This document shows positions 5,731 to 40,738 of a stretch of DNA of 64,000 nucleotides, one piece after another; positions within the stretch are counted from its first letter, which is position 1; each line of letters starts with the position of its first letter. The stretch comes from Amphiscolops sp. MND2022 (taxonomy: Eukaryota): assembly GCA_964187785.1 (NCBI GenBank), contig CAXLNC010000776.1, positions 1 to 64,000 of the forward strand. The letters run 5' to 3'. The position numbers were made by a program, and so were the translations under genes. The notes under the pieces were generated by a model. The model was given only the letters and a program-made list of their open reading frames with translations. It had not been told where the DNA came from and made no database searches.

Positions 5731-8700
5731 TATATATATATACATACATACATACATATAAATAGATAGATAGATATATATATATATATTTAAAGTAGAG
5801 AGAGATGTCCTGCTGCAGCCATGATCGTATGGAATTCATGCTTTGCTCTGGCCTGCCTGCCTGCTCAACGCATCACTGAAAGAGTGGATATCGCCTCCCA
5901 GACTCCAAGCTAGGCACGCAAAGCGAAGAAAGAACGCGCAGCGACTGGTCAAACCAGAGTCGCCATCTCAGCTGATGCTCTCAAACTGCTTTATTCTGAC
6001 TGCAACTACGGTGATCTCAATGCATCACCTAATCCTTGTTTCGTTTCGTCGGGTTCTACTCCCCTTTGGGCAAATCTGTATTCCTGTTGGAAGTTTTCCA
6101 CATGTTCACTTCTTATCCATAAAAAGGGGGTATAATTCACTCCCAGCTCCAGTTTGCCATTGCACATGACTTGTCCATGTTTAGGAGCCAAGAAAGGGGG
6201 TTGATAGCACAGACACAAAGCACACTTAAGAAATCAGACAGTGCGCCTGATGCATCCTGATTCCTGAGCCTGGGGGGCCAAGGCTATTTTTCGCTTCTAA
6301 AACAGGAAGGCTGATATGTTTTTAATCAAGACCCTCCCACAATAACCTCCGAAACAAGCACAGAAATAACCTGGCAATGCTATGTTCATTTCTTGAGGTC
6401 GTTTTTGCCTTGCAAAGTTATTTCTTGGAAAAACCTTACAAGATTCCTAGGGAAGAACACCGACAACGACTTTTGCCGGGAAAATCGATCCAATCCGCTG
6501 TCGGAGGTTTGTCAGGGACTTTTGTTGCTTCAAGTCTACACGAGCCCTTTGCTGAGGACTCTGTGAAGGGCTCTCTTCCCCACGAAAAATGAAGGACGCC
6601 AGGGCTTTGTCAGGGATCTTTGCTCCATCAAGGTTGCATGAGCCGGGCTCTCTTCTGGGTGCTTTCCCGCGAATACGAACGACAACAATCCAACAATGGC
6701 CCAAGCAACCTGCTCCGACAAAGAATGCACAATACAAGCGCAATTGCAGATGATGGGCCCCATTCCGGTACACTGCGAGGACCCTGCCCGGAGGAATGGG
6801 AGCTGTGCTTTGCAGAGGTGGACCTGTTTTTGCGTGTCCCCAGACCTCCACCCTGCACAAACACAGATCAGAGACAAGATCGTCTGATCAGACCGTCTTT
6901 CTGTCTGGACATTTTCGCTCAGGGAGTGGTTGACTCAAACCCCCCAAAAAATGGAGTTCAGGTCTTTCCTCGCTCCTTTCATAGGTGTGTATCACTGACT
7001 ATCTGGTTTTTGCTGAGGGGCGGCTTCCTTACTGGACAAGCTCTGTGCATGAAGAGACACAAGGCTTTAAAAGCAGAGAGCAAAATCTTTTTGTCCTTTA
7101 GGAACCAGAACTCTAGAAACAGAGAGCAAAAACACAGACTAGTGTTGTTTGCATTGGACCTCGACCGGCTTCGCATTGCCTCTGCACTCTGCTCCCACTT
7201 CTCCACCCACTCCAGTCCAGGTCTGAGAGCACCAAAAACCACAGTCGCAGATTGACGCAGTACTCTCTCGCAAACACCCCTGTCGCCAACCCGAGCTGCA
7301 GTGAGGACGCTCTCTTCTGCCGGAAAAACGCAAGAAAAATCGCACCGTTTTCTGGCGGGATTAGACACTTCCGGAGCCCAAAAACCGCAGCAAATATTCG
7401 GACGCGTCAGACAACAGCAATCGCAATCACAGAGAAATCGCAGCACTCGGTTTGCTCGGCTCCAGGCTGCGCCTTTCCTGAGGATCCGAGCATTCCAATT
7501 TTCTGGGGCTGTTTGCGGAAGCATCCAACCCCTTGTTGCACAAACACAACTCCTTCCTTCTTTTTCTTGCTGAATGACCGCTGACATCCAATCTCTTTGA
7601 GAAAATAGCCATACAAACAAAACAACGGGTGGAACAATGGAAAGAACCACAAACAACAAACAAGAAGAAAGAAAATGTGAAAGGAACGTTCAAGTTTATT
7701 CCTAAATGATTTCTGGTGCTTTCCAACATTTTGACTATTTGTGATATCTTTGAGGAGAGTGGTCGATAATCAGACATTCCCACGTTTTGCTTGTTGCGGT
7801 GCGCTTCCAATTGCAAGTAGGTCGCAGAACACTCATGACAAGCATGCAACAACATGATAAAGATGTTAACCAGAGTGTGGATCTCTGATGAGGGACCAAG
7901 GCCATGAACATATGCAATTTCTTGCTGGATTGCCGAGCGAGACCCTTGACATAAACCACTTATGGTAAATCAAGCTGCTGTTCCAAAATGCTCATGTCAG
8001 GCAAGCGGCTCGGCCTGAACAATCACATAAATCTCGAAGCATGATCCCACTAGACCCCGAGCCCTGGAGCAAATCTGCTGATGTGTTCATGATCAAATTT
8101 TCTCATGGCGCTCTGTCTGCTCGGATCTAAGGGCATAGATAGGCTATCCGTCGAGCCGGCAAGGATGCCGCAAACGCTGCGTAACTGAATCCGCTCTTAG
8201 TGCCGCGCTCTTTGGAGAAGCCCTTTTCAGGGAAGGGAAATTCACGTACCAGTGCAGGGTCCCCCCGAATAGTTTTATGGGGGAAAATGTCACCGGTGCG
8301 AATCATTTTGCTTTACTTTCCAAGGAAAATCATATGGACAAGGGGGGGCCGAAAAATTTTGGAAAAAAAAACCCTCCAACCGGTACCGGTACGAAGATTT
8401 AATTTCCCAGCTTAAATAAAACACACGAAGTCTTTCGAATGAATAAGTTTTGCCTTTGTGACACAGTGCAGTTTGAGCAAGCACCCAAAACGGGCTCAAG
8501 CACTATAACCGTGATCAGAAATTCCCGGGATCAACAGACTTCCCTCTGCACCGGCGCTGCCCTAATCTACTCGACCCCATGCATCTCCGCTGTGGTTTCT
8601 TATTGGATTGTGCTTGGTTCACACTTAGTTCTTGCAGCTTGCACTGAGATTTCTCCAAACCAGCGATTCGGAGCACTGAATTCTAAACCCGGAGGTTTCC

Positions 8701-9299: not shown

Positions 9300-10850
9300 T
9301 CACAAAACTAAGGTGAGGTTATGAACTCGCCAAGGCTGCAACTCATCCAAGGAATGGATGGTGCTGGATCCTGACCTTAGAGGCCCAGCAGCGATACTTT
9401 TCATATCGCAAAACTATTTGGTGCTTGTTTGTGGGGGGGGGGGTATCACACAATTATCGCGCGATATGTTGCAAAATGGGGTACCGTTGACAAGGAAATT
9501 GAAGTGAAACTAATTCCGTGATAATATTTGTCCGCTTTCGCTTTCGTATTGATACTAAAATTGGACAGATGATCTTTTTGCATTCATGTTCACATAGATA
9601 CTTCACCCCGAATTACACTTTCGCTTTCGCTTTCGTAATTCTGAAGGTTATTAATTCGGAAATCATGTTGTTTCGCTTTGCGTTAATTTCTGTGTCAATG
9701 GTAACGGGGTATCACAAAGATCGTGACAGATGTGCCTGTGTGAAACTAGGCGTTAAGGGGGGCATCGTGCCCTTATTGGGGAGCTGTTAACCTCCCTGAC
9801 GAGGTATCGCGCCATATGGCGTATCGCAGCGATGGTATCGCAATATCGCACGATACGGGGGCACTAAGATCCTGACAGCAAAACACCAGTGGCTGTGACC
9901 TGATGAGGATCCAAGCCAAGGCGACCTGCACACTCTAGCAGGACGACGTGGAGAGAGCTGTCGACTGAGAAGAGTATCGAGGAGCAACGGCCAGACAAGA
10001 GCACAACATTTAGCGTCACAAGGGGAAAGCTCCTATACAACACTAACTTCTCCCGGAGCTCATTCGACACAACAGTCTCATTGTTTCCTCTGAGCTCCTC
10101 AGACGCAGATGGCGGGGCCAAAGAGCACTGAGAGGCTACTGCCATGATAAAGTCATAGCTGTTCCTGAGCTCCTTGGACGCAAACACAAGCGCTCCAAAA
10201 GGGTCCTTGGACAAAGCTGCCATGACAAACTCGTGGTTGCTCCTAAGCTCCTCTGACGCAAAGAGCTTGGCTTCTACCGAGTCCTCGGAGAAGAGTGCCA
10301 TGACAAACTCGTGGTTGCTCCTCAGCCCAAGCTCCTCTGACGCAAAGCGCCTGGCTCCTACAGGGTCCTTTGAGAAGAGTGTCAAGACAAACTCGTGATT
10401 GCTCCTCAGCTCCTCTGACGCAAAGCGCGCGGCTGCTGCAGGGTCCTTGGAGAAGAGTGTCATGACAAACTCGTGGTTGCTCCTAAGCTCCTCTGACGCA
10501 AAGCGTACGGCTTCTGCAGGGTCCTTGGAGAAGAGTGTCAAGACAAAGTCATGGTTGTTCTTGAGCTCTCTGGGAGCAAAGTGTAGGCACAAGGAAGTCT
10601 TGCAGCCTGCTGCAATGACCACCTCTTCACTGTTCTCAAGATCTTCGGACGCAAGCTGCAGGGACAACAACTTCTTGGAAGCCACAATGACAGCCGCATA
10701 GTTGCCATTGAGCTCTTTGGAGTCAGACTGCAGCCCCATAGCATCCTGGAAAACTGCTGCCATGACAACTTCATGGTTGCTCTTGCTAGCCAACTGGAGG
10801 ATGACTTCACTGCTTGCTTCTTCCCGACGGTGGCTCTGAGCCAAGACCAT
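9300..10850 (-). CDS. DUF4116-repeat protein with C-terminal ubiquitin-like domain, paralog 1; exons 10850-9877 and 9375-9300 if the MITE is spliced out
   Basis: ORF 9864-10850 has ASEELRSNHEFVM-type repeats, then LVTLNVVLLSGR...GVLLSGS. Sequence 9375-9300 continues SGSSTIHSLDELQPWRVHNLTLVL*, matching the C-terminus of paralog 2 (SGSKTIHSLKELEPWQVHNVTLVL*). The start codon is uncertain. The DUF4116 and Ubl assignments are from motif recognition. Confidence 0.75.
9376..9868. mobile_element. MITE with 8-bp TSD (introner candidate)
   Basis: TIRs CTTAGAGGCCC / GGGGCACTAAG. TSD ATCCTGAC at 9368-9375 and 9869-9876. Internal GCGATA/TATCGC repeats. A partial sister copy lies at 15403-15562. Confidence 0.9.
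9483..9702. mobile_element. Nested MITE inside the 9376-9868 element
   Basis: TIRs ACCGTTGACA / TGTCAATGGT. 8-bp TSD AATGGGGT (9475-9482) / AACGGGGT (9703-9710). The sister copy at 15403-15562 lacks this insert. Confidence 0.8.
10150..10570 (-). repeat. Intragenic tandem repeat of ~75-81 bp units encoding DUF4116-type repeats
   Basis: About five near-identical units of gacaaactcgtggttgctcctaagctcctctgacgcaaag. Confidence 0.85.
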
Positions 10851-22092: not shown

Positions 22093-23040
22093 TTACAGAA
22101 CCAAGGTGACATTATGAACTTGCCATGGCTCCAACTCCTTTAAAGAATGGATGGTCTTGGATCCGGACAGCAACACGCCGGTGTGTTGCACCTTGGTAGG
22201 GTCGAAACCAAGGACCTCTGCACACTGCCCCAGGACGGAGTAGAGAGGGATGCTGACTGAGAAGAGTATCGAGGCGGAACGGCCAGACAAGAGAACCACA
22301 CTCAACACCACAAGGGGAGAATGCCTAAAGGCCAGCAGACTCTCCCGCAACTCATATGCCACAACAACCTCCTTGTTCCCTCGGAGCTCCTCAAACGCAA
22401 ATTGCTGGTCCTCAAGGTCCTTGCAGACTACTGCGATGACAAACTCATGGTTGTTCAGGAGCTCCTCGGATGCATAGAGCAAGGCCACAGGGTTCTTGGA
22501 GACTGCTGCCATCACTATCTCATCATTATTCCTGAGCTCCTTGGACGCATGCTGCAGGGCCCAACCACACTTGGAGACTGCTGCCATCACTACCTCGTGG
22601 TTGTTCTTGAGCTCCTCGGATGCATTTTGCAGGGCAAGAGGCTCCTTCGAGACTGCTGCCATCACTATCTCATAATTGTTCTTGAGCTCCTCAGATGCAA
22701 AATGCAAGACAAGGGGCTGTTTGGAGACTGCTGCCATGACCAACTCATGGTTGCTCTTGAGCTCTTCGGACGCATTCGCCAGGGCGTCGGGGCAGTTGGA
22801 GAATGCTGTCATGACTATCTCAGCATTGTTCCCGAGCTCCTTGGACGCATGCTGCAGCTGCTCAGAGGTATCCTTGTACAACGTATCCTTGTCCAACATA
22901 CCCGTCCTGAGCATGTTGAAGACTTCTTTCAGGTCTCTCTCTATGACTCTCTTGTGGTTGTGCTTGAGCACAGTGGGCGCAAGGACCATACGTCTGAGCC
23001 GAATACACTGCTGAAACAAGTCAGCTGGTGGCTGAAGCAT
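22093..23040 (-). CDS. DUF4116-repeat protein with C-terminal ubiquitin-like domain, paralog 2 (uninterrupted, 315 aa)
   Basis: About six ASEELKNNxEIVMAAVSK repeats, then VVLSVVLLSGRSASILF...LLSGSKTIHSLKELEPWQVHNVTLVL*. Colinear with paralog 1. Confidence 0.8.
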   Translation of the reverse strand: MLQPPADLFQQCIRLRRMVLAPTVLKHNHKRVIERDLKEVFNMLRTGMLDKDTLYKDTSEQLQHASKELGNNAEIVMTAFSNCPDALANASEELKSNHELVMAAVSKQPLVLHFASEELKNNYEIVMAAVSKEPLALQNASEELKNNHEVVMAAVSKCGWALQHASKELRNNDEIVMAAVSKNPVALLYASEELLNNHEFVIAVVCKDLEDQQFAFEELRGNKEVVVAYELRESLLAFRHSPLVVLSVVLLSGRSASILFSVSIPLYSVLGQCAEVLGFDPTKVQHTGVLLSGSKTIHSLKELEPWQVHNVTLVL

Positions 23041-23954: not shown

Positions 23955-24774
23955 CGCGCTTGAGAAGTATTGCTTGTCTATTTTGCAGTCCGATGCCCTC
24001 TGCCCGGTGAGGAACCCACAGGTTTTGCTATGGGCCATGGCAGATCTAGTTTTGGAAAGTTCTGGCCTGATTGACAGCCATTCATTGTTGTTGCCTGACT
24101 TGAAGGAGGTGTTGACAACCAAAGCTTTTCTCATTTGTGCATAGGCACTGCGTCTCTCAAATGCTAGATGGCAATTCAATAAATAACTTCACATGTCTCG
24201 AAGTCCCAGAGAGGTCAGCTCAAGCACTTCAGGAGCCAAGGGAAGTTGTCTGGGAAGACCACTTGAATCAAGAGAAAGAGAACGAAAGATAGAATGTAAG
24301 GTATCTTCAATCTGTTTGTCAGATGTGGTGGTCTTGGAACTGGCACAATGATGCACTAAACGCAAATCCCTCTGCCACCATTCCAAAACCATTCACCAAC
24401 CCTTCCAGTGATCTTTGCCATGTGGGACAAGCTGACGGTCACTATCATGGCGGAGCTAACTGGAGCTCTCCCCANNNNNNNNNNNNNNNNNNNNNNNNNN
24501 NNNNNNNNNNNNNNNNNNNNNNNNNNNNNNNNNNNNNNNNNNNNNNNNNNNNNNNNNNNNNNNNNNNNNNNNNNNNNNNNNNNNNNNNNNNNNNNNNNNN
24601 NNNNNNNNNNNNNNNNNNNNNNNNNNNNNNNNNNNNNNNNNNNNNNNNNNNNNNNNNNNNNNNNNNNNNNNNNNATTGCGTTGGGCTTTGAATTTCAAAT
24701 ATTGGAGCCTTAAATAATTCCATAATAAGTTTGGTGAAAAATAACGCTCTTTCCGCACCAAATCTGCGGAATTT

Positions 24775-25154
24775 TGTGAAAACCCTACATCTGGAAACAT
24801 CTTCTGTGCCTCCTCAGAACATCAGCCAACCCTATGGACATCTGGGGCTCAAGGCCACATCGCAAAAAAGTGGCACATCAGGGCACCTGCACCTTAGATC
24901 ATCAATCATCTGGTTATCACATCACATGGTCAGTCGTTGTTATTGTATCACATTGACACATCATTATCAGGAGCTGTCAGTGTCATTGCAGAAAAGGATA
25001 TCTGCACATAAGGAAGACTGACATCATGATTGTCATCATAGGAGGAGAAGTCAGAGAAAAAAAGGAGAGACATCAGGAGAGGATCAATGACATATCACCA
25101 TGACGTCGTCCATCTTATCAAGAACATCAGGAATATCTCTTGTCTAATTTCACA
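24775..25154 (+). repeat. 5' LTR (380 bp)
   Basis: TG...CA ends with a 7-bp terminal inverted repeat. About 15 substitutions and 6 indels versus the 3' LTR by hand alignment. Confidence 0.95.
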
Positions 25155-27222
25155 TGGTAGCAGAGCGACAAGACTGACAGCGACATCGACACAACGACTG
25201 TCAACATCAACATCCGTAGATAGAAGTAGCAGCAGCAATGGCAGCGACGACAACATCCAAGTCAGCGGCGGTTCTTATACTGACAACAACAAGCACTGTG
25301 TATCCAACACCAAGCTCCTCGTGGATACTGACATCAAGCAGCAGGAATCAGCAGATTTTTCAACTGCATCACCAACATCTTCATGTGGCTCCATGACAAG
25401 CACATCTACACTTGTAGGCTCTACATCAATAGCTGGACCTACTTGTTCACTGTCAACATCTCCATCTCATACTTCTACAACAGTATGCAATGACCTTCCT
25501 GTCGCATCATCAACCTGATCTACATCATCGAGACTGATCACCTCGAAGACAAAGGCTGCCGACATCACCATCAACATGCTACATCTTGGCCAAGCCAAGT
25601 TGCCCATGCCTACACCGTATGACGGTACATCCAACTTCATGGAATGGGCTCGAGAGCTTCGCACCTTCCTGCTCATCAGCAACTTCGAATACATCCCACA
25701 GCTTGACGACGCCCTGACACATGACACTGAAGTCACCATCGAGGAAATCCTTGCTCATACTCCTGAAGGAGCATTGGAACTGACCACCATCAGCACTAAC
25801 AGCGAGGCCGTCGCTGCCCTGCAGGCAGAAAAGTCAGGCACACCAGAGGATCAACGTCCTGCTGATCGTGATGGTGACACCATCAATGGCGAGATTGACG
25901 TCTTAGAGACTGCCAACACTACAGCCCAAACCACTTTAGCCGGACATCGGTTCAATATTGAGAAGGCTGCCAGTTACCTCCTGTATATCTTGCTGCACTC
26001 TACCAAGCCCGGCTCCGAGATCAACTCTTACATCAGGTCCACCCACCGCTTTGAGGCCTGGAGACTCTTACGTCTCAGGTCCTCGGGTGGACATCAACTG
26101 CAGTCATGTTCCTTGCTGCAGAACATCCTTTCTCCCAAGTGGACCGAGTCATCACAGCAAGACCGGTTCAGGGAGTGGCTGGAGAACATCAGCCGTTATG
26201 AAGCAGAGGCAGCTGACATCGCCTACAATCTCAAGGTGGCGACATTGATAAATGCACTTCATGGCCAAGTCAAAACAACATCTTCTCCTCAGCATCCGAC
26301 CATCGCACACCTGTGGCAGCAAGTTCGAGACATCGTCGAGAACTACTTCAATAATGCCTACCTCCCATCCTCGTCGAGCCATGGCATGCACAACATCGGC
26401 GACGACATCAATGCAGTGAAAGGAAAAACGAAAGGCAAAGGAAAAGGCAAAGGAAAAGCAGGAGGAGGAGGCAAAGGTCAAGGAAAGAAAGGAGGATACA
26501 ACATCTACAACAACTACAACAGAGGAGCAAAAGGAAAAGGAAAGTCAAAAGGAAAAGGGAAGGGCAACAACAACAATCATTCAGGATACTACAACAGCAA
26601 CTACAACAACAACAACAACAACAACAAAGGATCTGGAAAGACTTGGTCTTCCTGGTCCAACAGCAACAGTCAGATGAACAGCTTGAAGGGCAAATCAAAA
26701 GGCAAAACATCTTTGTGGTTCACAAACTGCAATAAATCGGGGCACACAACAGATAGATGCTGGTGGCGGACTGGCCAATGGCCAGCATTGAACAACATCA
26801 CAACACAGCAAGCAGCCCTCCCACCACCACAGCAGCAAATCGCTCTTAACAGCCAGACGTTGGACATGCCCATCTCGCACATGCCTCGAGATAATCTTCC
26901 TACTTGCAATGCTCAAGGACAGTGCATCTCTGGATCCTATCCTACAACATCATCAAGGGCATCTACATCATGCATCACTACTCCTGGCCCTGTTGTCTAT
27001 GACATCAGCAACATCGAGATTCAGGATGACATCTGCCAAGTGGGTCACTTCTACAATCCTGAGTTTCTGTCTGAGATCCCATCATCGTGGTTACGTCATT
27101 ATGGAATCATGATTGATACAGGTGCTAGTGCATCTGTTGCACCTGTGTTCCTTGCGGACCACATCAAGTTGGAGAAGCTTGACGTGCCATCCTCCATGAA
27201 GCTCCAGACAGCAACTGCATAA
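25087..27222 (+). pseudogene. gag: Copia gag and aspartic protease
   Basis: ORFs 25087-25518 and 25576-27222 share a frame and are separated by one TGA (25516). Contains PTPYDGTSNFMEW, KGKGK tracts, a degenerate zinc knuckle F-TN-C-NKSG-H-TTDR-C (26719-26760, first Cys is Phe) and protease IDTGAS (27115). Ends in a premature TAA at 27220. Confidence 0.9.
25155..25166 (+). promoter_or_regulatory. Primer binding site, tRNA-Met(i) type
   Basis: TGGTAGCAGAGC immediately follows the LTR. TGGTAGCAGAG is complementary to the 3' end of many eukaryotic initiator tRNA-Met. Confidence 0.85.
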
Positions 27223-30200
27223 CCTATGCATCTTCATGGTTTAAAGACGTTCACCTCATCATTGGTCAGATTGATCTCCATGTTCGCTTTTACATCCCAA
27301 ACGTCAGTCAGCCCATATCAGGCGCGACGTTGAACATCAGTGACCCATTGTCATCACTGATCATCAAGAATGGCAAGGAAGAACAGCTTCAGTACCTTCA
27401 TCGTCATCTATGGGCAGAAGCCATTGCACTACCTGTTGATCATGACAGCAATGCAGCTTGGATCTTCTACATCCAGCACAAGCACTTTACTGATTCCAAT
27501 GGCCTATGCCTGAACAACATCGAGCCTGACACGGACATCAGCGCTGAGCATGATCATTCTGGTGAAGCTAGAGCTCCAACATCCAAGAAGGCCTCATCCT
27601 TGCCATCTGCTGAAGAAATTCATCGACATTCTTTGACTCATCAGCCCTTCCGCAGCTGGTGCCCGGTTTGTCAAAGAGCTCGGGGCCGACAAGAACATCA
27701 TCGATGTCGCCCTGCTCAAGAACAACCAGCATCAATCATCCAAAAGGATTATGCGTACATGAGTCATCCTGAAGAAGAACCTCATCTTCGTCTGGGTTCT
27801 GGCCGCAACATCACTATTCTCACAATGCTGGAGACGTCCACTGGAATGGCTCACGCCATCGTAGTCAACCGCAAGTTTGACTACTCACATCCTCTGATGC
27901 AAGCCAAACGCTGGATAACAGCAAACGGCTTTGCACAATCTACAATCCAGACGGACAACGAGACATCCCTCATCCAGCTTGGAGAGCACATTGCCAGAGA
28001 TCTGAACATCAAGTTCCGGACTACTCCTCCATACAGCCATCAATCCAACGGCTATGTAGAGCGCTGGCATCATAGTTTGTTTGCCCAGATACGGTCCATC
28101 CGTTTTCAATGGGCAGCCCATCTTGGCATCCAGCCCCATCAACTTCCAGCACAAGCTACACCATGGATTGTCCAACATGCATCTTTCATCTGCAATCGCT
28201 TCCTCATCAAGAGTTCCGGTTCTACGTCTTATGGACATTGTTTTGGGCGTGAATGGAAAGGTGACATCTATCACTTTGGTGCTAAGGTCTTCGGGGACGT
28301 TGGAGTTCGTGAGAACCTCAAACTTCAACATCGCATTGCAGATCAAAAACTACAAGGCATCTGGCTTGGACGAGACATCACTACCGGCCTACATCTTCTT
28401 GCATTGCCTGCAGCTGCTCATTCACATCCGGGTGTTCATGGTCAGATCTTCCGCTGTAGGACCATCACTCCTGTTCCGGTCGAACATTGCTTTGACGTGA
28501 TCTTCACATCGTCGGTAGCTTGGCCACAACTTGAACTGACTGACCACATCGAGGGAAGAATGAGAACATCACGTTGCAGCAGCACCTTGATAGAGAGGCA
28601 CAGCGTCATCCTCCTCAGGACTATGTGCCTCAACAGCCAAAGGCAGTGCTTCCACGTCCACCTCCAGGTCTTGAACGTCAACATCAGCCAGTAGTCCCTG
28701 CTGCCCCTCCTGCGGCGGTACAACCTCAACATCAACCTTTCATTCCGGCGCCTCCACCTCGCCCACCGCCTCCACCAGCACATCCTCGACCTGCACAATC
28801 TGCTCAACATCGACCTGCTGGTAAGCACTATAATCATCCTCGGGCTCAGAGAAACATCCACAATGTTGACTTCGACAACCTGCTGGACATGAGCCTGGAA
28901 CATCAGATCTTGTACCTTGCTGTCAATGAGGACCCAGCTGAAAAGAACATCATGACTGAGCTTGTCAATGAACACTGTACCTCAGCTCCTCATGAGTTTG
29001 TGGACATCCAGTCTGAGGGCCACTATCTTGATGACATCTCTGGCTACTCTCGTGAACATCTTCAACGTGCATTCTATGAGGAGTACCAGAAGCTTACTGA
29101 CAAGGAGCTTTATGAGGAAGTACATCGCACATCTCTCACATCTGAACAACAAAAACAGATTGTCAAGACCCGCTGGGTTGTGAGTGACCAGCCAGGTACA
29201 TCAGGTGAGCCCATCTTGAAAGCCCGGTTTGTGGCCAAAGGGTACAGCCAGTACGTCACATCGGATACTTTTGCAGCTACCCCGGCTTCGACGTCACTGC
29301 GGGCTTCGTTGATGCTGTCCATCATTTCAGGCTGGAGTGTTACATCATGCGACATCTCATCTGCCTTTATTTATACACCTCTACCTGAAGGCCAAAACAT
29401 CTGGGTTGAACCTCCAGTGGAGGTCTATGGGCGCCAAAGTCCCATCATCTGGCGCCTCAAGAAGGCGATGTGTGGGCTCAAAACGAGCCCACATCTTTGG
29501 CAGAGACACCTCGCATCTCTATTGGAGAACATCGGTTTCACGCAATCGCGTGCAGACCGTTGTCTCTTCACATCTGATGACATCGCCTTGCTCATCTATG
29601 TGGACGATGTGCTCATCATTGGCACATCAGCAGCAACATCAGATTTCCTGCGGAAGCTTGAGCATCAATTTGGCCTGAAGCACGTCACACATCTCACTCA
29701 CAGCCAGGATTTGAAATTTTTGGGCAAACAACTGCGCTTACATAGTGACGGCAGCATTTCAATAGGCTTAGACTCATCCTACTACATCAACATGTTGAAG
29801 CCCTACTATCTCCACAACGACAACAGCAACCCTGTCACAACCACTGCCAAGGTACAGCAACCTCTTGACAACAGTGCTCCTCTTGATGCAGCTGCACATC
29901 ATCAATTTCGCGCCACAGTTGGTCAGCTCATCTGGACATCCTTAGAACGTCCCGACCTCGTGTTTGCAACTAAGCTACACAGCAGCAGAGTGCAACATCC
30001 TACCACAGCTGATGCAGCTAGCTTGAAGCACACCTTGCGCTACATTAAGGGGACCGTGGATTACCATCTTGTCCTTGGTCGTCATCTTCAACATCGAGTC
30101 CGTCAGTGGAATGGTCAAGCTATTCCCATCCACGTCAATGCATACACGGACAGCGACTGGGCCGGTGACATCAAGACTCGCAAGAGTACCTCAGGATACA

Positions 30201-30640
30201 TCATCAGTGTTCTGGGCGTTCCTCTCAGCTTTGCATCTAGGACCCAGCATACCATCTGCCACAACTCAGCAGAAGCGGAGCTCATAGCTCTGGGTAGTGG
30301 ACTCAATGAGTCCATTCACATCACGCAGCTCATCAAAGAGGTCCAGGATGGCATGAAGCAGCACATCTTTGACATCCCTGACCATACTGAACCTCAGCAA
30401 CATCCTGTTGTGACACTGCATACTGACAGCACTTCTGCATCTTCTTTGGCATCCAAGTTGGGCGTCAACAAACGCAGTCGTCACATCAATTTGAAGTATT
30501 TGTGGTTGCAGGATGAGTGCAAAAGGGTGTCGTTAACATCGCTCGTGTTCCAACATCAGAGAACCCAGCAGATGTGTTCACAAAATTGTTGTCCGCTCCC
30601 CTCACGCGTCGACATCTATCTCCTTGTGGTCTGTGTCAAC
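27223..30640 (+). pseudogene. pol: Copia pol: integrase, reverse transcriptase, RNase H (frameshifted)
   Basis: IN: HSLTHQPFRSWCPVC, QKDY, QTDNE, SNGYVER. RT: KTRWV, KARFVAKGY, CDISSAF, IYVDD (29597). RH: TDSDWAG, RKSTSG, SAEAELIA, then a frameshift near 30516 to ENPADVFTK. Other frameshifts near 27245 and 28555. Confidence 0.95.
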
Positions 30641-31281
30641 TTCCCGTCGGAGAGGGGGAAGAACAGCAAGAACTTCAAGACATCAACATCTTGCTGGATT
30701 CCGTCGTGAAGTTGCACATCAAGCATCGTCAACAACAAGCTGCACAACTGTCTGCACAACTGAACAACATCACTGCTACAACTGATCAACATCATCAACT
30801 GACACGACTACAACAGCAGCAGCAACAGCGGAGCAACAGCTTAGATACTGTATACATCAATATGATTGATACTGTTGATCACCTAGCAGCAACAGCAAGC
30901 AGATACATCAAGAGAAGCATCTGACATCACAGCAGAAGAACGTCAGAGGAAGCAGGCAGCTGAGATCAGAGCAACAGTTCAGAACTTCAGAGGAGACAAC
31001 AGCAACAACAACAGCAACAGCAGCGGTCACCTTCTGAAGCACAACATCAAGATCCATCACCACGACCACGACGACAGCAACATCAAGAGAATGGAGAAGA
31101 GGCTAGAAGTGAGAGGGGGCCATCAGTTACATCCAGAAGGTCGAGAACATCATCACCAGGAAGACAGGAAGGAGAGGAAAGAAGGAGTCAAGAAGGAGAA
31201 AGGAGAATACGACCATGTCGACAGCCACCGACAGCAATTGTTGCCATTAGACAGAGAGCATCACATCATCGAAGGGCCATC

Positions 31282-31959
31282 ATGGTTGTCACATCTCTTG
31301 TTCTTTCTGTTGTTTCATCTTTGTCACCTGTTGCAGCATCGTTGCCGTTTTACATCAGTGAAGCAGCTAGATTGTCCCAGCGCACATCTCAGTTGGCATC
31401 TCACATCCCGTGGGACATCCCTTTGCACATCATTGGGAACATCAGTCATCGAGTCATGGCAGGCACATCATCTACAGCATCTGTTGCAGAGGAAGTCATC
31501 ATGGTTGGTGAACATCTTGCAGCACAGCCTGCATCACCACAGCCGACATCTCCTCAGCAACAGCAGCAGGCACATCAGCATGCATCTCCACAGCAAGGAG
31601 AACAGCCATCAGTGGTGCCAGCCATCGAGAAGCAGAGGGACATCAAAACCCATCTCATCCAGGACATCATTGAGCAACGCATCGGCATCTTTGACAACAC
31701 AGCACCGTCAACAGACATCAGGAACATCTACAGGAACTTCAGTGAAGTGTACATCGACGGCCACCATCTTTCATTCAACAACATCGATGAATTTGACCTG
31801 TGTCATTGCATCGGGCTGCTATGCCCAAGTTCCATCTGGGGCACACACATCTCATCTACAACATCACACATGGGGCAGACATCAATCAAACGTTCTACAT
31901 CATCCTCAGCACATCTGAACATCAAGTGCTACTTAACCACAACGAGCTCACATCAGTGA
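31282..31959 (+). CDS. Extra ORF between pol and the 3' LTR (env-position ORF, unknown function)
   Basis: 225-aa ORF in the same frame as the RNase H tail. It has a hydrophobic N-terminal stretch (MVVTSLVLSVVSSLSPVAASLPFYI), a P/Q linker and a globular-looking C-terminal part. Confidence 0.45.
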   Translation: MVVTSLVLSVVSSLSPVAASLPFYISEAARLSQRTSQLASHIPWDIPLHIIGNISHRVMAGTSSTASVAEEVIMVGEHLAAQPASPQPTSPQQQQQAHQHASPQQGEQPSVVPAIEKQRDIKTHLIQDIIEQRIGIFDNTAPSTDIRNIYRNFSEVYIDGHHLSFNNIDEFDLCHCIGLLCPSSIWGTHISSTTSHMGQTSIKRSTSSSAHLNIKCYLTTTSSHQ

Positions 31960-32240
31960 CAGCAGTGACATCAGAGGCATCCACAGTCAGAGGTGCACAT
32001 CTGAGTCAGCTACAGCATCCTGTTGCTCATCTGAGACCATCAAGTCACATCATCATTGGCACTTTGCCAGAGCATCAGGTCACATCGTTTGCGGAACTTT
32101 GCCATCGTGAGAGCTTGCAGCTTTCACATCACATCACAGCAGAGACAGCAGTCTCATCTTGACCTCAGTCCATCTGAGTGACATCAGCACATCTTGAGCC
32201 AGACATTTCTTTGAGAGTTGAAGCACATCTGTTTCCATCT

Positions 32241-32249
32241 GAGAGGGGG
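32241..32249 (+). promoter_or_regulatory. Polypurine tract
   Basis: GAGAGGGGG directly abuts the TG start of the 3' LTR. Confidence 0.9.
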
Positions 32250-32625
32250 TGTGAAAACCTTACATCTGGAAACATCTTCTGTGCCTCCTCGGAACATCAG
32301 CTAACCCTATGGAATCTGGGGCTCAAAACCACATCGCAAAAAAGTGGCACATCAGGGCCCTGCACCTTAGATCATCAATCATCTGGTTATCACATCACAC
32401 GGTCAGTCATTGTTATTGTAGCACATCGACACATCATGAGCTGTCAGTGTGTCATTGCAGAAAAGGATATCTGCACATAAGGAAGACTGACATCATGATT
32501 GTCATCAAAGGAGGAAAGGAGAAGTCAGAGAAAAGAAGGAGAGACATCGGGAGAGGATCAATGACGCATCACCATGACGTCGTCCATCCTATCAAGAACA
32601 TCAGGAATATCTGTCTAATTTCACA
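32250..32625 (+). repeat. 3' LTR (376 bp)
   Basis: Aligns end to end with 24775-25154 and is followed by the TSD AATTT. Confidence 0.95.
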
Positions 32626-33885
32626 AATTTCGGGGGTTGTCCTGCAGATTCTGGCCTCTGAATATGGCCATGCCATACGCCACCAAGCCAGAGCTCCACT
32701 AAGTGCTGGCCGATTAGATTCCTCCAGATACCTCTATGTAAGTGATCATTTAGATCGGGGGGGGGGGGGAATAAATCTACATGTCTCATAGTGTTAGGAA
32801 GCTGGTGCTCGTAACAGAGCCATGTGAACCCAGAGCTCAGGCAGTGAATCACCTGGACACTAGGGAGAAAGACCGTCTGCAGCTATTGCACCCTGTTTCT
32901 TCACATTGAGACACCCAAAACCCCACATCCTGGGATATGGGGTATCGCCGAGATGGTCTCGCAGTAGAGCGCAAGACGGCACTAGGCCGACAGTTCAGAA
33001 AGTCTATCCTGTTGGGCATGGAGTGCATTTGGCTCAGACTGTGGGTTTTGCTTTTGCTGTCCTTCTTGATCTCTGCACTTTATCAATGCACTCCCTCTAT
33101 CTGTCCGTTGATGTGTCTGTCTCTCCTCCCACCTCCCCTCTTCTAAGCACATCGAGCTTTGTCTTCCTTTCATTGTTTCCTTTGTTTGTTCCTGTTTTTC
33201 CTTTGTTTGTCTCTCTGCTTCCCTCCCTCTCTCTCCTTCTCTCAATCTATATATATGTATATATATATATATCTCTCTCTCTCTCTCTCTCTCTCCCCCT
33301 CATTTGTCTCTCCCTTTGGCTCTCTTTTCTTTCTCCCCTAAGTTAGAAAAAGGCCAATCATTTATTTTACTTGTATCGCTGCTACATCTCTTCTAGACCC
33401 TCGTTCTCTCTCTGTTTCTCTCTCTATATCTCTCCCCCTCTCTCTCTCTCTCAGAGCAATTTGGCCTTCTGTAAGTTTCTTCCTCTGTGCACTCCCCTGG
33501 CCCTGATTGAATAGGCTGCTCTTTGTTTCATGACACTAAGTCAACTTTCTCTCTTTGTGTGCCCTCTTCTCCCATCACTGTCTTCTCCTGACTGCCAGAG
33601 CAGCACGTGCAATGAAAGTGACCACCCAGAAGTGGAAAACAGGCCTGGTCCAATTTAAAAAGGGTTTGAAGCAGGGCGCTTTGCGCTTGCAGAATGCCTA
33701 TTTCTGCAAGCGACTTTTCTCCTCTCAGGCATAGGACTTTTAAGGAAGAAAGTTGCCACAAAGCGCAAATTTGTCATTACTCCATGGTCAATTCAAAATG
33801 CCTTTTAAAGTGGATCTGGTCAATTCTTCCACTCCTGATCTACAACGAAGTTCAACCACTGTGTTAGCGGCTGCATAGCTGGCAC

Positions 33886-33939: not shown

Positions 33940-36900
33940 CTCGCAGACGCATGGACTACCGGCAAGAAGCGATGCATATGTCCCTGCAGGTCGAGCCCCT
34001 TTGGTGGCCACTGACTCTTTCCAAAAAACTTCATATTGAAATGTCAGAAGCCTGGGCACCACCCCAATGTGAAAAAACGCTCTCGGTCCGGGGGGGAGTC
34101 TCGGAGTGGAAAGGCCATGCTTGGATCAACTCTCTAAATTCTGGGGCGTCCTTGGAGCAATTCTCGGAACTGCTCTCACAATATACGTGGGAAGACCCAA
34201 TTCTCGGACCAAGTCTCGGAACGACTACCGGTTTGGATGGGAAACCAAAATTTCAGCCCGAATTCTCAGTTTTCTATCAAAACTGGGGTTGTCCCCACGC
34301 AATGGACAATGGGCCATGAAATCACTACATAAATATTCTGCATGGGAATTGTTATGCAAATGTAGCTGTAACCTGGATGCAATGATCAATCTGTGAGGTA
34401 CTTGTGTATTGATGCAGAGGCCCACAGACAAAGATCATACCCTCAAGAGCCGTCTATATACCGGCAATTGCAATGGTAACCTCAAAGGACACAAAACAAA
34501 TCATTGTTGTATTATTTGTATTCAATCATGTGAGGACGACAGTAGTGGGTTTAGGGATGAAGATTGTGTGAGTTGTTTTGCACCAGATGAGAGCTCTAAA
34601 AGGACAAGCTCTAAACCATTCTTGAAATCACCCCAGATAGCCTCTGCTCAAGACACATGCTATCATTGGAGGAATCCTGCCCTCCAAACAAGATCTGGTT
34701 CTTCTATGCTTAGCACTGGGCCCTGGGGAACATGAACCTGGAAGGTGAGCAAAGCACAAGAATGACAAAGTTGCACGCATTCGCTGCTGACTCTAGGCAA
34801 AAAAAAACAAAAAAACAAGAGAACATAAAAACAGTATTTTCACAGCATTGCGCCGGGGGATTGTCCCGGGACTGTCCTGGCATTTTCCTGAGATTTACTC
34901 GGAACTTGGTTTATGTGCTTCGCTTTTCCCCAAGAAAAAGGCAACACATGAATAATATTGACCCCACCCAATTCGCGGGATAATCCCCAAAAGTTGTTTA
35001 TGTTTGTCGTCTTTTTATTGAAACTTCGTGTTCTCAAAAGTTTGGTAGGAGAAGGCACAACTCAATATGCTGAAATTCCAGCCGACTTGAATTGTTCATA
35101 CACTTATTTAGAGGCATTTTGTGCGTGCTTCACACAATGCTTTCTGCCAAAACAAGTTCCAGAATGTCAGGACTTTTGCTCCTTGATAGCTGATAGTGAC
35201 CATCCGGGACCTGAGTGAGTGTGTATGTAACCAATGACTTTTCACCATCGCCATGATGGTTCAAACACCGACCTCGCCATTTGATCAGTCTAACCAGCAG
35301 AGAGTAATTGCTGCCCCTGCCTTCAAAATAAACAGCACTCTAAAGATCCTGAGCCGTTAAGATCGCCACAAAAAAAACAGGATGTCTTACCATGGACCTA
35401 TGAAGTTTCCTATGCGCCGTTTTGCGCGGCGATTTTGTACAGAAATCCACATCCCATGGAATTTCGTGGAAACCCATCTTCACAGTAGGAAAAACAACAC
35501 CAAATACATATCCAACGAAATCATCTTGTTACCACTGTTTTGCCAGGAAATTTGACAAGAAACATTGAAAACCACCTGGATACTCACTAAACAACTGTGT
35601 AAGTAGAGAAACATCTGCACAATGCTGCAGAAGACAAGGTAGGATCGCCTTTGGTTCAGAAGTTTGGTTCCGAATCTGGAATGCATTTTCAAGTTTGGGA
35701 AAAAAAACTTGTGTTCAGCCGAGAAAAACAAAACCGTAACCCGCCAGATCTTGTGAAATAACAAATTCCACCTCTTTGGGGAGCAAATCAGCTGCAAAAG
35801 AGCAAGTACCGAACCTTTTTGTCAAGTGTGAATGTCTGACAGGACTTCCACACATACACTTTTCCCAGAACAACTCGTTGGGGCAAATCTAAGGGGTGGC
35901 TGCATCAGATTTACTCGGCAGAAGGAACTATAGAGTTCCCCAACTTATGACAGAGAGAAGTACAGACAAACTCATCATCTACTTTTACAGAGAAGGCCCA
36001 GGAGTCTCCAAAGCAATTTTTTGATTCAGGAACACCCTTCCAAATAAAAAACCTTTTTGACTCCCACGCCCTCCCCCTGTTCTTATACTGAGTTTACTCA
36101 AGCAAGCGACAAGCAGAGCCGGGATAAGGGGGAGGGCCCGGGATCAAAAAGACATAATTTGTCATACCATTGTGGATAGACAAGGATTGATTCGAAAGAG
36201 CCTTATACATGTACCCACCATGTAGAAAATTGCATGTGCGAGCAGAAGTTCCGACACGGTCAACTTCAGGACCTTTCTTGGCAATTCTATGCAGGGGATT
36301 TTGTGTCATTCGCTAGAAAACATTACTGACCCGACAATTTTTTTGTGGGGGGGGGGATTACCCTCCGACTTCAAATTTCACGAATTTTCATTGGGTGGTG
36401 TTTTCGTGGTCAATGGTAATTTATTGGGGGGATTTCTCGACAAGTTCGGACCTAAGCGCACGCAAAATCGCAATCGCAATTCGCCAGCGACTTAAATCGC
36501 AGGAGGCAAATCGGAAGGGAACTCCGCAGCCAGAACGATTAACAGGCAAAAAAATTCCAGATCCCAATCGTAATTCGCTAGCAATTTATAGTTTACTATC
36601 ACAGTAATAGTTCTCTATTTGTGGGGGGAAAGCCAGGTGTTTCAGAGACCCTGTCGTAGTCTTTTACTACCGTCGTAGTGTTTGCTGCCACCTATGACAG
36701 TAGTATTTTGGTATGGCAGGATCCTTAGGCCAAGGAATATCGATAAAAATCGACCGAAATGGCCCTGAAGATTTCGCATGGAAGGTGGAGCAAAACAACA
36801 CCCAACGCTTGCACCAGCGAATCCAACAAAATCCGTCAAAATCCGACCAAACTCTCCGAAGACTTCCCGGACTGTCCCTGAGACTTTTTGGACACGTTTT

Positions 36901-37010
36901 GGAGTCCCGGGATCGGAGGCGCCAGGGGATATTTTCGACACTTTTTCGGCATTTCGGGCCTTCTTTCTGTCCTCATCTGTGTATATGTGTGTATGTATGT
37001 ATATTTATAT

Positions 37011-37862
37011 AGAGATTGTGAGCCCACTATCCACCTATACCCCCAAACCGAGTTAGTTCACTATCCACGTGAGAGCTAGCCCACTGTCCACGTCAATTTT
37101 CCCCTATAAAAAGAGGTGTTTGAAATAATTTTGGCAGCCATGTTGGTGTCATGCTTGTGTGCACATTTTGTGGTGTGTTTGGTGAGTGTGTGGCCATTGC
37201 AAGCGTGGGTGTCGTGAGAAATCGGCCCATTTTCGACAGTGGAAACCTTGTAAAACTGGATTTTCAAAATTTTGTAGTTGCTAACGCAACGCAACATCTT
37301 CCGGGCAAGGACCTAAACCCGGCCCGGTTTTTTGTTCAGTCAAAACAAAGCGGTGTTTTAGTTTTTTTTTTTTTGGGGGGGGGGGGGGCATGTTGGAGAT
37401 GTACATGATGAAAATGACAAAGAGGAAGAGGAACACAAGAAGAAGAAGACAAATAAGAAGAAGGAATAAGACAAATAAACATAAAAATGATAAGAATAAA
37501 TGAAATTCGAAAAAATCTGAAAATGGATAAGCACATAGGTGGAGCATCATCTGGTCCTGATGTTTTCTTTTTTCATGTTGCTTTGTTTTTTGGTTGGTTA
37601 GTTTGTTAGTTTTTTGTTTTGGTCTTAGTGCTTTTTGTTGATTGTAGTTTACCCTTGTTTTCCTTGCAATTTCAATTTGTTGTTATTTGGCCCTCTGTTT
37701 TGCTTGGGTTTCGGCCCATGTTTTGAACACGTTTTTTATGTGTTTGGTTGTTCATTTTCTGAACCATGTTTTTGTTTGTTGGGAAGTCTTTTTGTTTGGC
37801 TAGGCGTGTTTTATTGTTTTATTGTTGTTCCTTTTCTGTGTTGTCATTGTTGATGTTGTTGG

Positions 37863-37902
<40 letters not shown>

Positions 37903-38564
37903 CTTTCTTGTTTTGTTGTTATTGTATTTTAAATGTATTTGTTAATTGTTGTCGTTATTGTTGATAGAATGTTTACAAATGTGTTTTTCCTGGTTGTTGC
38001 ATTCTGTTTTTCTTGTTCTTGCTGGAAGTTATATTTTATTGTTTTGGTTTAGGTTTATGCATTGTTTTTGTTTGCATGTGTTTGTTTTAGACATAATTAT
38101 TTTGTATTCATCTTTTGAGGTTTTGTTTGGTTAGTTAGCCCACTATCCACCTTGTTGCCGAGGGTTCAAAATATGTTTGGGAGTGGTCTTTTTGAAACAC
38201 ACATTTTGGAATTGATGAAGGCCACTATGTTGAGGACATCAAGGAAACCCCTATTTTAGACGGGGCTTTGCTACTTCTCATACGAGGTTTTTGGGAGATG
38301 TTAAGACAAAATGGAGAGCCACGTAAGATTTGATCCACTATCCCCGTTTTCCGTTCTTATGCTGCACGGAATGTGGATAGCGGGCAACGCCATGTGGATA
38401 GTGGGCTAACTCTTCAAGTCTGGACCATGAAAATCACACAGCTCGTTGCCCCCCTTGTGTTGTGTGTTTATTTTGATGTTTTTCTTGGAAGGGGCGGGGT
38501 AAAGGTGGGTAGTGGACTAACTCTGTTTTGGTGGTAAAGGTGGATAGTGGGGCGACTGTGCAGC

Positions 38565-38565
<1 letters not shown>
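37011..38565. mobile_element. Composite TIR element(s) of the CCCACTATCCACC family, flanked by TA/TG repeats
   Basis: Arrays of CCCACTATCCAC on the left and GTGGATAGTGGG on the right, with a TTG-rich interior. The two ends do not match exactly, so it is probably nested. Confidence 0.7.
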
Positions 38566-38598
<33 letters not shown>

Positions 38599-38624
38599 AT
38601 ACATTGATCCAGCTATTTATATAT

Positions 38625-39127
38625 GTTGTAAAATTAAAAATTGGTCCAATGTTTGCCCTTCTTGAAGTTAAAAATTGGTCCAATTTTTTGTTTTGTTTTT
38701 CTTGAAGATCTCGTTCTCCCTGCAGAAAGCAGAAAGAAGAAAAAACTCCAAGAAAACAAAAACAACAAAAAACACAATTTTCAACGTTACAAATTGGTCC
38801 AATTTTGTTGCGCAACATACTTGGACCAGTCTTTAACTTAGACTTGGACCAATTTTTAATGTGAACATTTGTCATTTGTTGTGATTTTGTTTTGACTGAA
38901 ATCACTATTTTAAAGTGTTTTCAGCAAAGCATGCAAAATTTAAAGACACACAAAAATAACACTATTTGTGAACACACCTGTGCTAACTGCTCTTGTCAAA
39001 ATGTCCGTTAATGTCCATTTTCTGCATTTTTCATTTTGGGGGTGTTCGGAATTTCCAAATTTCTGAGATGTTTTTGATGGGTCGCCAAAATTCAACAATA
39101 ACAGAATACCAAAGCAACTAAAACAAA

Positions 39128-39196
<69 letters not shown>

Positions 39197-40738
39197 GAAG
39201 CAAGATGCAAAACAACACATGTAAAATTGTGACTCAAAACAAAACAAGAGAACAAACAGAAAAACAAAACAAAAGAACATCTTGCAACAAAAAGCAAACA
39301 AAACAAAAAGCAAGAACCAGAAACTGAAGTGAGAAACAGATATTCATTTTTTAACAACCCAAAACACTGGAATTGCAAGGAAAACGGTGATTTTCATAAG
39401 AAACAGAAAAACAATCACAAAAAAACAAAAACAAACACAAACACAAAACAAGAACAACACCTAGGCCACTCCAAGAAACACAAAGAACAAAACATAGGCA
39501 AGCCAAAAAGAGACAATTAGAAAAAAAAAAAACAAAAATAGCAAAACACTCCAACACAAACAAAGCAAAACAAACAAAACCAAACAAACACAAAACCAAA
39601 AAAACACAGAAGAAACCCCTAAAACAGGAACACCGCCAATAAACAATCCAACAACAAAACAAAAACAGAGCAAAATAAAAAAAACAATCCCTAAACAAAA
39701 GCAAAACAAAAACAAGAAACACAAAAACACCTAAACCTTCCAAACCCAAATAAACAAGACTATGCCACCCCCACAGACAAACAATGGAAAACAAGAAGCA
39801 TTTTTAATAATTTGCAACTTTACCAAACACACAAAAACAAACCACAAAACCACTAAATCCTGAAACAAAAACAAAAATGGGAAAGAAAAGGACGATGACC
39901 ATGACTCCCTCAAGAGAACCTTCTGGCACATATGGTCATGGTCCTCTGAAAATTTGTTTCTGGAAAGGAAAAGACGATGACCATGACCAAGATTTCCTTA
40001 AAAAAACTTGCTACACATATGGTCATGGTCCTCTGATAAATCTTTTTCAAAAAACCACCATTTTGCCATGCTCAAAAACAGCCCACCATTTTCATAAATT
40101 ATCTGTTTTTCAGCATACATTTTTATTGCAACTGCTGTGTTTTGCTGAAAACACAATAAAATAGCGTTTTCAGAAACACAGCTTTTCAAAAAGACAGTTA
40201 GTAAAAACATTTTTCACCCCAAACCACCTTTTTCCCCAAAAAAATGTCATTTGGGCAATTTCCGCTGGAACCGTAATTTTATAGTTTTTCCTGGTTTCTC
40301 TGTTTTGGGCCCCAAAAATTTTTGGCCAAAACAGATAGCGCGCACAAAAATGCGCGTTTTTCTGCCTTCTTGACACACATAGTGTCAGGCAACTTCTGCT
40401 AAAAATCCATTTCTTCACTTTTCTCATATCTGGATAACCACCTTAAAATACACTATTTTTATAGGTTTTGGGGGCCTTTTTTCCATTGTCTGTTTTTTTT
40501 CTGTTCTCTTACAGCAACATAAAAACAAAAACAAAAATGCAATTTTCTATTCGAAAACCTCATATTTGACATCCCGACAACTTCGCGAAAACAGTATTTT
40601 GCCACTATTTGTGTTTTTGAACATGCCCCCTAAACACTTTAAAAATAAGGAAAAACTTGGACTGGTTTTTAGCTTTGAGCTTAGACCAGTTTTTGACTTT
40701 AAAGCTCCCAAAGCCTGGACCAGTTTTAACTTTACCGC
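38625..40738. mobile_element. Non-autonomous TIR element in a (TA)n tract with TTGGTCC subterminal repeats
   Basis: Left GTTGTAAAATTAAAAATTGGTCC versus right reverse complement GCGGTAAAGTTAAAACTGGTCC. TA repeats on both flanks; A/C-rich interior. Confidence 0.7.
39131..39196. repeat. (CAA)n microsatellite
   Basis: About 22 perfect units. Confidence 0.95.

Follow-up and report, generated by a model that had tools for sequence, protein, structure and literature searches.

A window of 64,000 nucleotides (positions 1 to 64,000 of contig CAXLNC010000776.1, forward strand, from the assembly GCA_964187785.1 of Amphiscolops sp. MND2022) contains, at 24775-32625, a complete Ty1/copia element of 7,851 bp that is now dead, its reading frames being broken and its zinc knuckle having lost a cysteine. 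The sense strand of this element is saturated by the word ACATC, which is found 160 times against 4 occurrences of its reverse complement GATGT (ca. 20 per kb); outside the element, 58 ACATC and 53 GATGT occur over 56 kb of window sequence (ca. 1 per kb). The word is hence about 20 times denser in the element than in its surroundings, on the RNA strand only, and the Poisson probability of the element's count against the window background is ca. 1e-143.

The element is enclosed by a target-site duplication (AATTT at 24770-24774 and the identical five letters at 32626-32630) and by two long terminal repeats (LTRs) in direct orientation: a 5' LTR of 380 bp (24775-25154, TG...CA, 11 ACATC, 15 CATC and no GATG) and a 3' LTR of 376 bp (32250-32625, 11 ACATC and 16 CATC), which share 91-95% identity. 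Directly after the end of the 5' LTR follows the primer-binding site (TGGTAGCAGAGC, 25155-25166), which we take to resemble the 3' end of the initiator tRNA-Met, and the upstream side of the 3' LTR is adjoined by a polypurine tract (GAGAGGGGG, 32241-32249). Three frames lie between them, all on the plus strand. The gag and protease open frame (25576-27222) contains a Lys/Gly/Asn-rich tract, followed by a zinc-knuckle remnant whose first Cys is gone (26719-26760) and by the protease DTG (27112-27129). The integrase frame (27330-28694) carries an HHCC finger (27621-27671) and candidate segments of the DDE core (27945-27962 and 28053-28070), and the frame for reverse transcriptase (RT) and RNase H (28574-30709) matches Pfam RVT_2 (E = 3.6e-24), has its YVDD at 29597 and holds 42 ACATC. 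Neither the gag/protease frame nor the integrase frame has a Pfam match at E <= 0.01. The position of the integrase upstream of an RVT_2-type RT is that of Ty1/copia, and since the integrase frame is separate from those of gag and RT, the copy must have been broken by frame changes. The remaining 3' region of ca. 1.5 kb (30710-32240) is the densest word array of the element (54 CATC and 29 ACATC per kb); it shares 68-72% nucleotide identity with the matching part of a related element on contig C707, and the translated matches shift frame. Overlapping sense open frames in different phases are found between 30500 and 32500 (31091-31918, 31282-31959 and 31800-32162). They are weak evidence of coding, as the word bias is suspected of depleting stop triplets (TAA 21 and TAG 35 in the element).

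The core of the word is CATC, present 282 times on the sense strand against 17 GATG across the element, and its flanks are biased: 57% of the sites have A at position -1, and 72% have A or T at +1 (or, alternatively grouped, A or C at -1 in 70% and any letter but G at +1 in 86%). Besides CATC (282/17), the most strand-biased 4-mers of the element are CAGC (118/34) and CAAC (112/33). In scans of the window (1 kb and 1.5 kb) the ACATC excess begins and ends at the element ends, the flanks of 2 kb hold 1 and 3 copies, and a comparable excess is found nowhere else in the window. The word thus stays at background in neighbouring host sequence. The hand counts given in a preliminary description of the locus proved exact (11 ACATC and no GATGT in the 5' LTR, 34 and none in 31261-32240), and our counts and scans likewise bear out that plain CATC is commoner than ACATC (282 vs 160) and that the word falls in all three phases, in LTRs and in untranslated parts, dropping to background beyond the target-site duplications. 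The spacing of CATC is near-geometric (mean gap 28 nt, coefficient of variation 0.86), which rules out a regular spacing or periodicity, and the gaps show a deficit of very short ones and a mod-3 bias, multiples of three being favoured in the 3' region (40/23/19). The sites crowd where coding constrains the sequence least, with 40 CATC per kb in the LTRs and leader and 54 per kb in 30710-32249, as compared to 24-34 per kb in the gag, integrase and RT frames.

This excess is not accounted for by composition or by coding. Shuffles of the element that preserve dinucleotides yield 29.6 +/- 5.1 ACATC (z = 25) and 105 +/- 8 CATC (z = 22), and the Markov expectation for ACATC rises from 30 (order 1) to ca. 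77 (order 2) against 160 observed, by which the specificity is placed at the level of a word of 4-5 letters. Every long open reading frame (ORF) exceeds both synonymous-codon shuffles (protein and the element's own codon usage held constant, z = 4-9) and dicodon shuffles (protein, codon usage and dinucleotides held constant, z = 3-7), and in the RT ORF the three phases are used about evenly (12/16/14). A simple codon, amino-acid or dinucleotide bias is rejected on these grounds, given that the excess survives both ORF shuffles, uses all phases and includes the LTRs; the earlier claim of a sense-strand, element-wide signal at the nucleotide level that is no codon bias is thereby upheld, and neither of the two outcomes named there as refuting it was obtained, the excess persisting under shuffles that keep codons and dinucleotides and being absent from the host sequence around the element. 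Among the one-letter neighbours of ACATC, the three that replace the final C are depleted to the same degree (0.45-0.53 of expectation), and at position 4 A and G are tolerated and C is avoided (ACACC 0.63 of expectation). This pattern suggests that a degenerate word, ACA(T/A/G)C, is under selection, and does not resemble the outcome of one substitution class. A hypermutation or editing signature (APOBEC-like, with one substitution class and 1-2 letters of context) was discarded because context at the level of the word is needed; furthermore, TA is not raised in the element where TG falls.

The contig that holds the element probably derives from a dinoflagellate co-assembled with the animal genome, as four lines of sequence evidence point there (the distribution of copia, the RT tree, the spliced leader and the relatives of the DUF4116 frames). 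The assembly (1.07 Gb) consists of chromosome-scale contigs and of many small ones, and the window is one of the latter (C789). All copia with 37-56% RT identity to the window element are located on small contigs, whereas those of the large contigs are ca. 30% identical to it, and in a maximum-likelihood RT tree the small-contig copia form one clade (support 100/100) apart from the chromosomal ones. The exact dinoflagellate spliced leader (21 letters) is present at C1301:15170, and versions with one mismatch occur on C131 and C1910 (all of them small contigs), while the reversed leader, used as a control, does not occur on the small contigs; in the window no relic of the leader was found. Moreover, the window carries two open frames with DUF4116 repeats on the minus strand (9864-10850, E = 2e-39, and 22093-23040, E = 1e-49). 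They are related to unnamed proteins from metagenomes and to transcripts of protists, the named matches being only protist and including Amphidinium carterae.

The word saturation extends to the relatives of the element: each related copia family of the small contigs is saturated by a sense-strand word of its own, and at least six words are in use. ACATC is shared by the window element with those of C707 and C509, CATCA/TCATC typifies C819 and C1673, CAACA (together with CATC) C1849, ACTAC/CTAC C620, C1210, C1539 and C1812, AGCTT C405, C869, C1228, C1279, C311 and C440, and TCAAG/TCAG C114, C1767, C1157 and C1047. All families exceed dinucleotide shuffles (z = 7 to 36), all have their highest word density in the least constrained parts, and in profiles of 500 bp over longer fetched stretches the density jumps abruptly wherever an element end falls inside the stretch. 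In the 3' part of the C405 element AGCTT climbs to 62 per kb, as dispersed copies that form no tandem repeat. AGCTT is sense-biased as well, its antisense counts coming almost wholly from the palindrome AAGCTT; its saturation is present in elements with an RVT_2 reverse transcriptase, and an LTR search recovered only further AGCTT elements with long open frames. The ACTAC and AGCTT families recur in an independent ENA assembly, and the ACATC family is multi-copy in the sequencing runs of a second organism (two studies). Underneath the family words lies a layer common to all the dinoflagellate families, which consists of sense-biased CAAC and CAGC, of CA at about twice the frequency of TG and of an A+C content of 52-61%. 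In the animal's chromosomal copia we observed mild word biases only (up to ca. 8 per kb, partly spread over phases) and no saturation; examples are GACG (32 vs 2 in 2.25 kb) in the element at C8:29576190-29580440 and ATTCA (19 vs 3) in another one. They may represent a weak version of the same phenomenon. Inside the AGCTT-saturated element of C440, a gap of 500 bp (7500-8000) is devoid of AGCTT and balanced in CA/TG, and is probably a nested insertion of foreign DNA. The letters TCAAG are also the final five of the dinoflagellate spliced leader; as the other family words are absent from the leader and the window has no relic of it, we treat this match as coincidence. The last eight letters of the leader (GGCTCAAG) are found on the minus strand in the 3' LTR region of the C405 element, which may be coincidence as well.

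The words have switched within the clade and turn over within families. The ACTAC family, in which CATC is at background, is sister to the pair formed by the window and C707 elements (support 94/92, 53% RT identity), so that the word has changed between sister families. Of 43 CATC sites in RT, 15 are shared with C707, and 7-10 of 35-49 are shared with other CATC families (1-2 expected at random). Across the 3' region, where the window and C707 elements are 68% identical in this comparison, 35-40% of CATC are kept as compared to 25-31% for other 4-mers, and the totals are steady (83 in one element and 94 in the other). As most sites are unshared and the totals are nevertheless held, density is maintained through turnover, with lost sites being replaced. 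After insertion, on the other hand, the words only decay. The two LTRs share 14 CATC and differ in three, by a deletion, by a CpG to TpG change and by a change of two letters (CGCATC in one LTR, CATATC in the other); as these are losses only, the creation of words by host mutation was rejected. Among the best-supported differences from other copies of the family, a CATC is missing from the window element in four cases and additional in one; copies differ from one another by ordinary transitions, and among the 40 best-supported differences only 5 touch a CATC. The words bend amino-acid composition even in the RT core, where His reaches 5.6% in the window element (2.0-4.5% in the others), Thr 10.9% in the ACTAC family, and Gln 8.1% in the CAACA family, while the AGCTT family has 15% Leu together with 8% of both Ala and Lys.

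Taken together, these observations (words that are oriented, bounded by LTRs, indifferent to frame, densest where sequence is free to vary, and renewed) lead us to place their cause in the retrotransposition cycle, at the level of the RNA or the first-strand cDNA: in every family the orientation of the word matches transcription, and the word stops at the LTR ends, i.e. at the limits of the replicated RNA or cDNA. We propose, at a probability of roughly 0.4, that the words constitute a family-private RNA code that is read by the Gag nucleocapsid of each family for selective packaging; the inferred parts of this reading are that the words act in RNA, that selection and not mutation bias keeps them up, and that Gag is their reader. 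The genomic RNA would be written from LTR to LTR in a private vocabulary, which for the window element would be a single-stranded A-C-A-(U/A/G)-C (mostly ACAUC) about every 28 nt, and for its sister families CAUCA, CAACA, ACUAC, AGCUU or UCAAG. Each word would be a low-affinity site for an RNA-binding protein encoded by the element, most likely the Gag nucleocapsid with its Lys/Gly-rich tail and single CCHC zinc knuckle. Through hundreds of such weak contacts each Gag would gain a high avidity for its own RNA, and the avidity would ensure selective packaging and protection among the many co-resident copia families. An element-encoded reader is favoured by the fact that the words differ between families of one nucleus, in which no components other than the elements' own proteins are known to vary from family to family, and the equal depletion of all three substitutes for the final C fits selection on the word better than one type of substitution. 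All families encode a Lys/Gly-rich tail and one CCHC knuckle, the residues of which vary from family to family but stay the same within the AGCTT clade. The preliminary description had suggested an RNA-binding array that keeps the genomic RNA unspliced, exported or packaged; an array on RNA is our preferred reading too, with the difference that family-specific words speak for a reader encoded by the element over a general host factor of splicing or export. An extension of the packaging code that we hold to be slightly less probable than the code itself is a barcode system, in which every copia lineage would have a private pentamer read by its own Gag, and competing retrotransposons would be reproductively isolated within one nucleus.

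Several observations weigh against a code read by Gag. The differences between knuckles are confounded with phylogeny, there being one lineage per word; retroviral zinc knuckles characteristically contact motifs that contain G, and ACAUC and ACUAC have none; and the shared layer (CAAC/CAGC and A+C) is not private, so that it needs another explanation. The window copy is itself dead through its frame breaks and the lost knuckle Cys, and searches of RNA runs found no run that holds the window element. Furthermore, CAUC shows no clear preference for hairpin loops, in which classic packaging signals are presented: its predicted unpaired probability is 0.59 (mean 0.46), which ranks 19th of 127 4-mers and is about what is expected from a G-poor composition. 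The idea that the words serve to keep the RNA unstructured was dropped, as the sense RNA folds at -33.6 kcal per 150 nt (flanks -34.2) and is more folded than its own shuffles.

A reader supplied by the host would act differently: the words would recruit abundant single-stranded-RNA-binding proteins (different ones for different families) that coat, stabilise or export the 8-kb RNA or keep it unspliced. Dinoflagellates have a greatly enlarged set of cold-shock-domain (Y-box-like) proteins, and these are the candidates in the case of the CATC-type families. Y-box recognition sites have a flank consensus to which the CATC flanks (A or C at -1, not G at +1) conform. CAUC is a high-affinity ligand of the cold-shock domain of YB-1, and A/C-rich RNA and CANC are preferred by Y-box proteins in general (PMC3458536, PMC7226217), a preference mirrored by CATC, CAGC and CAAC being the most strand-biased 4-mers and by the sense bias of CAAC and CAGC in all families, so that such proteins may explain the common layer. 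Cold-shock proteins make up ca. 60% of the annotated dinoflagellate 'transcription factors' and prefer RNA, yet the four dinoflagellate ones that were assayed (on double-stranded DNA only) had no sequence preference (PMC8106185). Moreover, ACTAC, AGCTT and TCAAG are not CANC words, and CACC, the second high-affinity motif of YB-1, is the least used CANC word (40/17), ACACC being depleted. One abundant target should also make the families converge on a single best word, and they diverge; nor are splice-like signals depleted in the element (AG 565 vs CT 503, AGG 125 vs CCT 130), as avoidance of splicing would have it. We consider host proteins an unlikely source of the family words. Less probable still is that the words arise incidentally, from a mutation pressure that acts on one strand during replication of the element and is caused by context-dependent errors of each family's RT or by RNA editing that reverse transcription has fixed. 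Such a pressure would act only on the transcribed and reverse-transcribed unit, would be strand-specific (and family-specific if derived from RT), would renew words while sites turn over, would leave its mark on any non-autonomous element that the RT copies, and could explain the shared layer that is rich in A+C and CA and poor in TG. It would, however, need 4-5 letters of context (30 or ca. 77 ACATC expected at lower orders against 160), and it would have to prevail over purifying selection on the core of RT strongly enough to double the His content; the equal depletion of the three substitutes at position 5 is not the mark of one substitution class, and the differences between copies are ordinary transitions that seldom touch a CATC (5/40).

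The least probable of the alternatives, in our estimation very unlikely, is that the words act in DNA, by attracting or evading either a base modification (5-hydroxymethyluracil, 5hmU, or 5-methylcytosine) or a chromatin protein of the unusual dinoflagellate nucleus. A preprint on Amphidinium carterae describes 5hmU peaks that are TG-rich (GTTGTTGTTG) and lie in transposons (copia interiors included), which they silence, and a hydroxylase that prefers single-stranded DNA (bioRxiv 10.1101/2023.11.30.569493). In line with a mark of this kind, GTTGTTGTTG is the complement of CAACAACAAC, which is frequent on the sense strand of the element (CAACAACA 13 vs 0), and AAGCTT, found in one of the families, is palindromic. 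The claim of a TG-rich motif is, however, absent from the published version of the study (PMC11572971). Recognition of double-stranded DNA would be blind to the strand, and the word of every family (AGCTT included) is on the transcribed strand; one nucleus would need a separate DNA reader for each family, and an element gains nothing from keeping a motif that attracts silencing. The suggestion of a base-modification motif in the preliminary description is thus disfavoured, since the words follow transcription in all families and differ between families that share one nucleus. It is more likely that the strand bias of copia contributes to the reported TG-rich 5hmU motif than that the words have a cause at the DNA level, and the TG-rich antisense strand of abundant copia may underlie the motif reported for dinoflagellate transposons.

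Signatures of packaging or recognition that span a whole genome are already known, whereas for family-private word saturation we found no published description, in agreement with the preliminary description, in the literature on dinoflagellate copia, on other retrotransposons and on Symbiodiniaceae k-mers. Oriented short words that a protein reads along one strand are familiar from bacteria (Chi, KOPS and uptake sequences); these are host DNA systems that extend over the chromosome at ca. 1 word per several kb, whereas each copia word belongs to a mobile element alone and is 10-50 times denser. Among the closest counterparts is human immunodeficiency virus 1 (HIV-1), whose A-rich genome serves Gag as a signature for packaging (PMC13056067; PMC12247898). 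Like the window element, HIV-1 shows the sense-strand bias of a reverse-transcribing element over its entire genome, with a proposed choice of self RNA through many weak Gag contacts, and in both cases the bias distorts codon and amino-acid usage. The bias of HIV-1 is, however, one of a single base, while the copia words have 4-5 letters at 20-60 per kb and differ between sister families in one genome, and their carrier is a copia retrotransposon of a dinoflagellate. Dispersed packaging signals are present in several single-stranded RNA viruses and in hepatitis B virus (PMC6281560, PMC5431903, PMC7612645), and the alphavirus capsid protein has multiple binding sites on the genome (PMC7499256). 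Dispersed signals of this kind resemble the copia words in comprising many degenerate sites with a short motif, in coding and non-coding parts; they are specific to the coat protein of their own virus, as the copia words would be to their Gag, and they differ in numbering tens per genome and in residing in stem-loops, as opposed to hundreds of words with near-random spacing and no sign of presentation in hairpins. The sites of Y-box/cold-shock proteins share with the ACATC family the CAUC core, the flanks and the A/C-rich context, and differ in that CACC is avoided and that no match exists for the words which the other families use. Among dinoflagellate elements, SmTCL, a heat-activated Ty1-copia of Symbiodinium microadriaticum (PMC5776459), is of the same kind as the window element (an LTR copia with the integrase upstream of RT, in a dinoflagellate host), and copia is the most abundant retrotransposon superfamily in the work cited on that species (PMC5890265); a word bias is not reported for SmTCL or for Symbiodinium copia in these two studies (PMC5776459, PMC5890265).

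If a private RNA code is indeed what the words represent, they would be the clearest natural case of selective packaging written across a whole genome instead of in one signal, with an alphabet that can be read from sequence and switches that can be placed on the phylogeny. The system would provide an extreme and experimentally simple model of how Gag finds its RNA (a five-letter word, hundreds of copies and six natural variants), and would imply that a constraint at the nucleotide level can reshape the composition of a conserved enzyme. In case the barcode holds as well, a change of word between sister families (such as ACATC to ACTAC) would be the retrotransposon counterpart of speciation, non-autonomous parasites would be forced to copy the word of their helper, and lineages would pay for their word by deforming their own proteins. 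A mechanism other than a packaging code would make the finding more novel still; were it a mutation bias of RT, a polymerase error spectrum specific to a word would itself be unprecedented. On the practical side, the words make the edges of elements and of nested insertions easy to spot, and they probably give rise to long open frames that are spurious and lead gene calling astray.

Two further observations concern sequences outside the copia families. A DNA-methyltransferase search for other classes of dinoflagellate retroelements returned one small-contig locus, the coding part of which is unsaturated (C1674:2984-6397); its DNA-methyltransferase-like frame adjoins a TGATG-rich stretch (45 per 600 nt) that is probably a microsatellite. 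In the window itself, a region of low G+C (36750-39800) switches strand from TG/GT-rich to CA/AC-rich, and within it a (GTT)n tract (ca. 37.83-37.93 kb) faces a (CAA)n tract (ca. 39.09-39.22 kb) as an inverted pair, the letters of which may be compared with the 5hmU motif GTTGTTGTTG.

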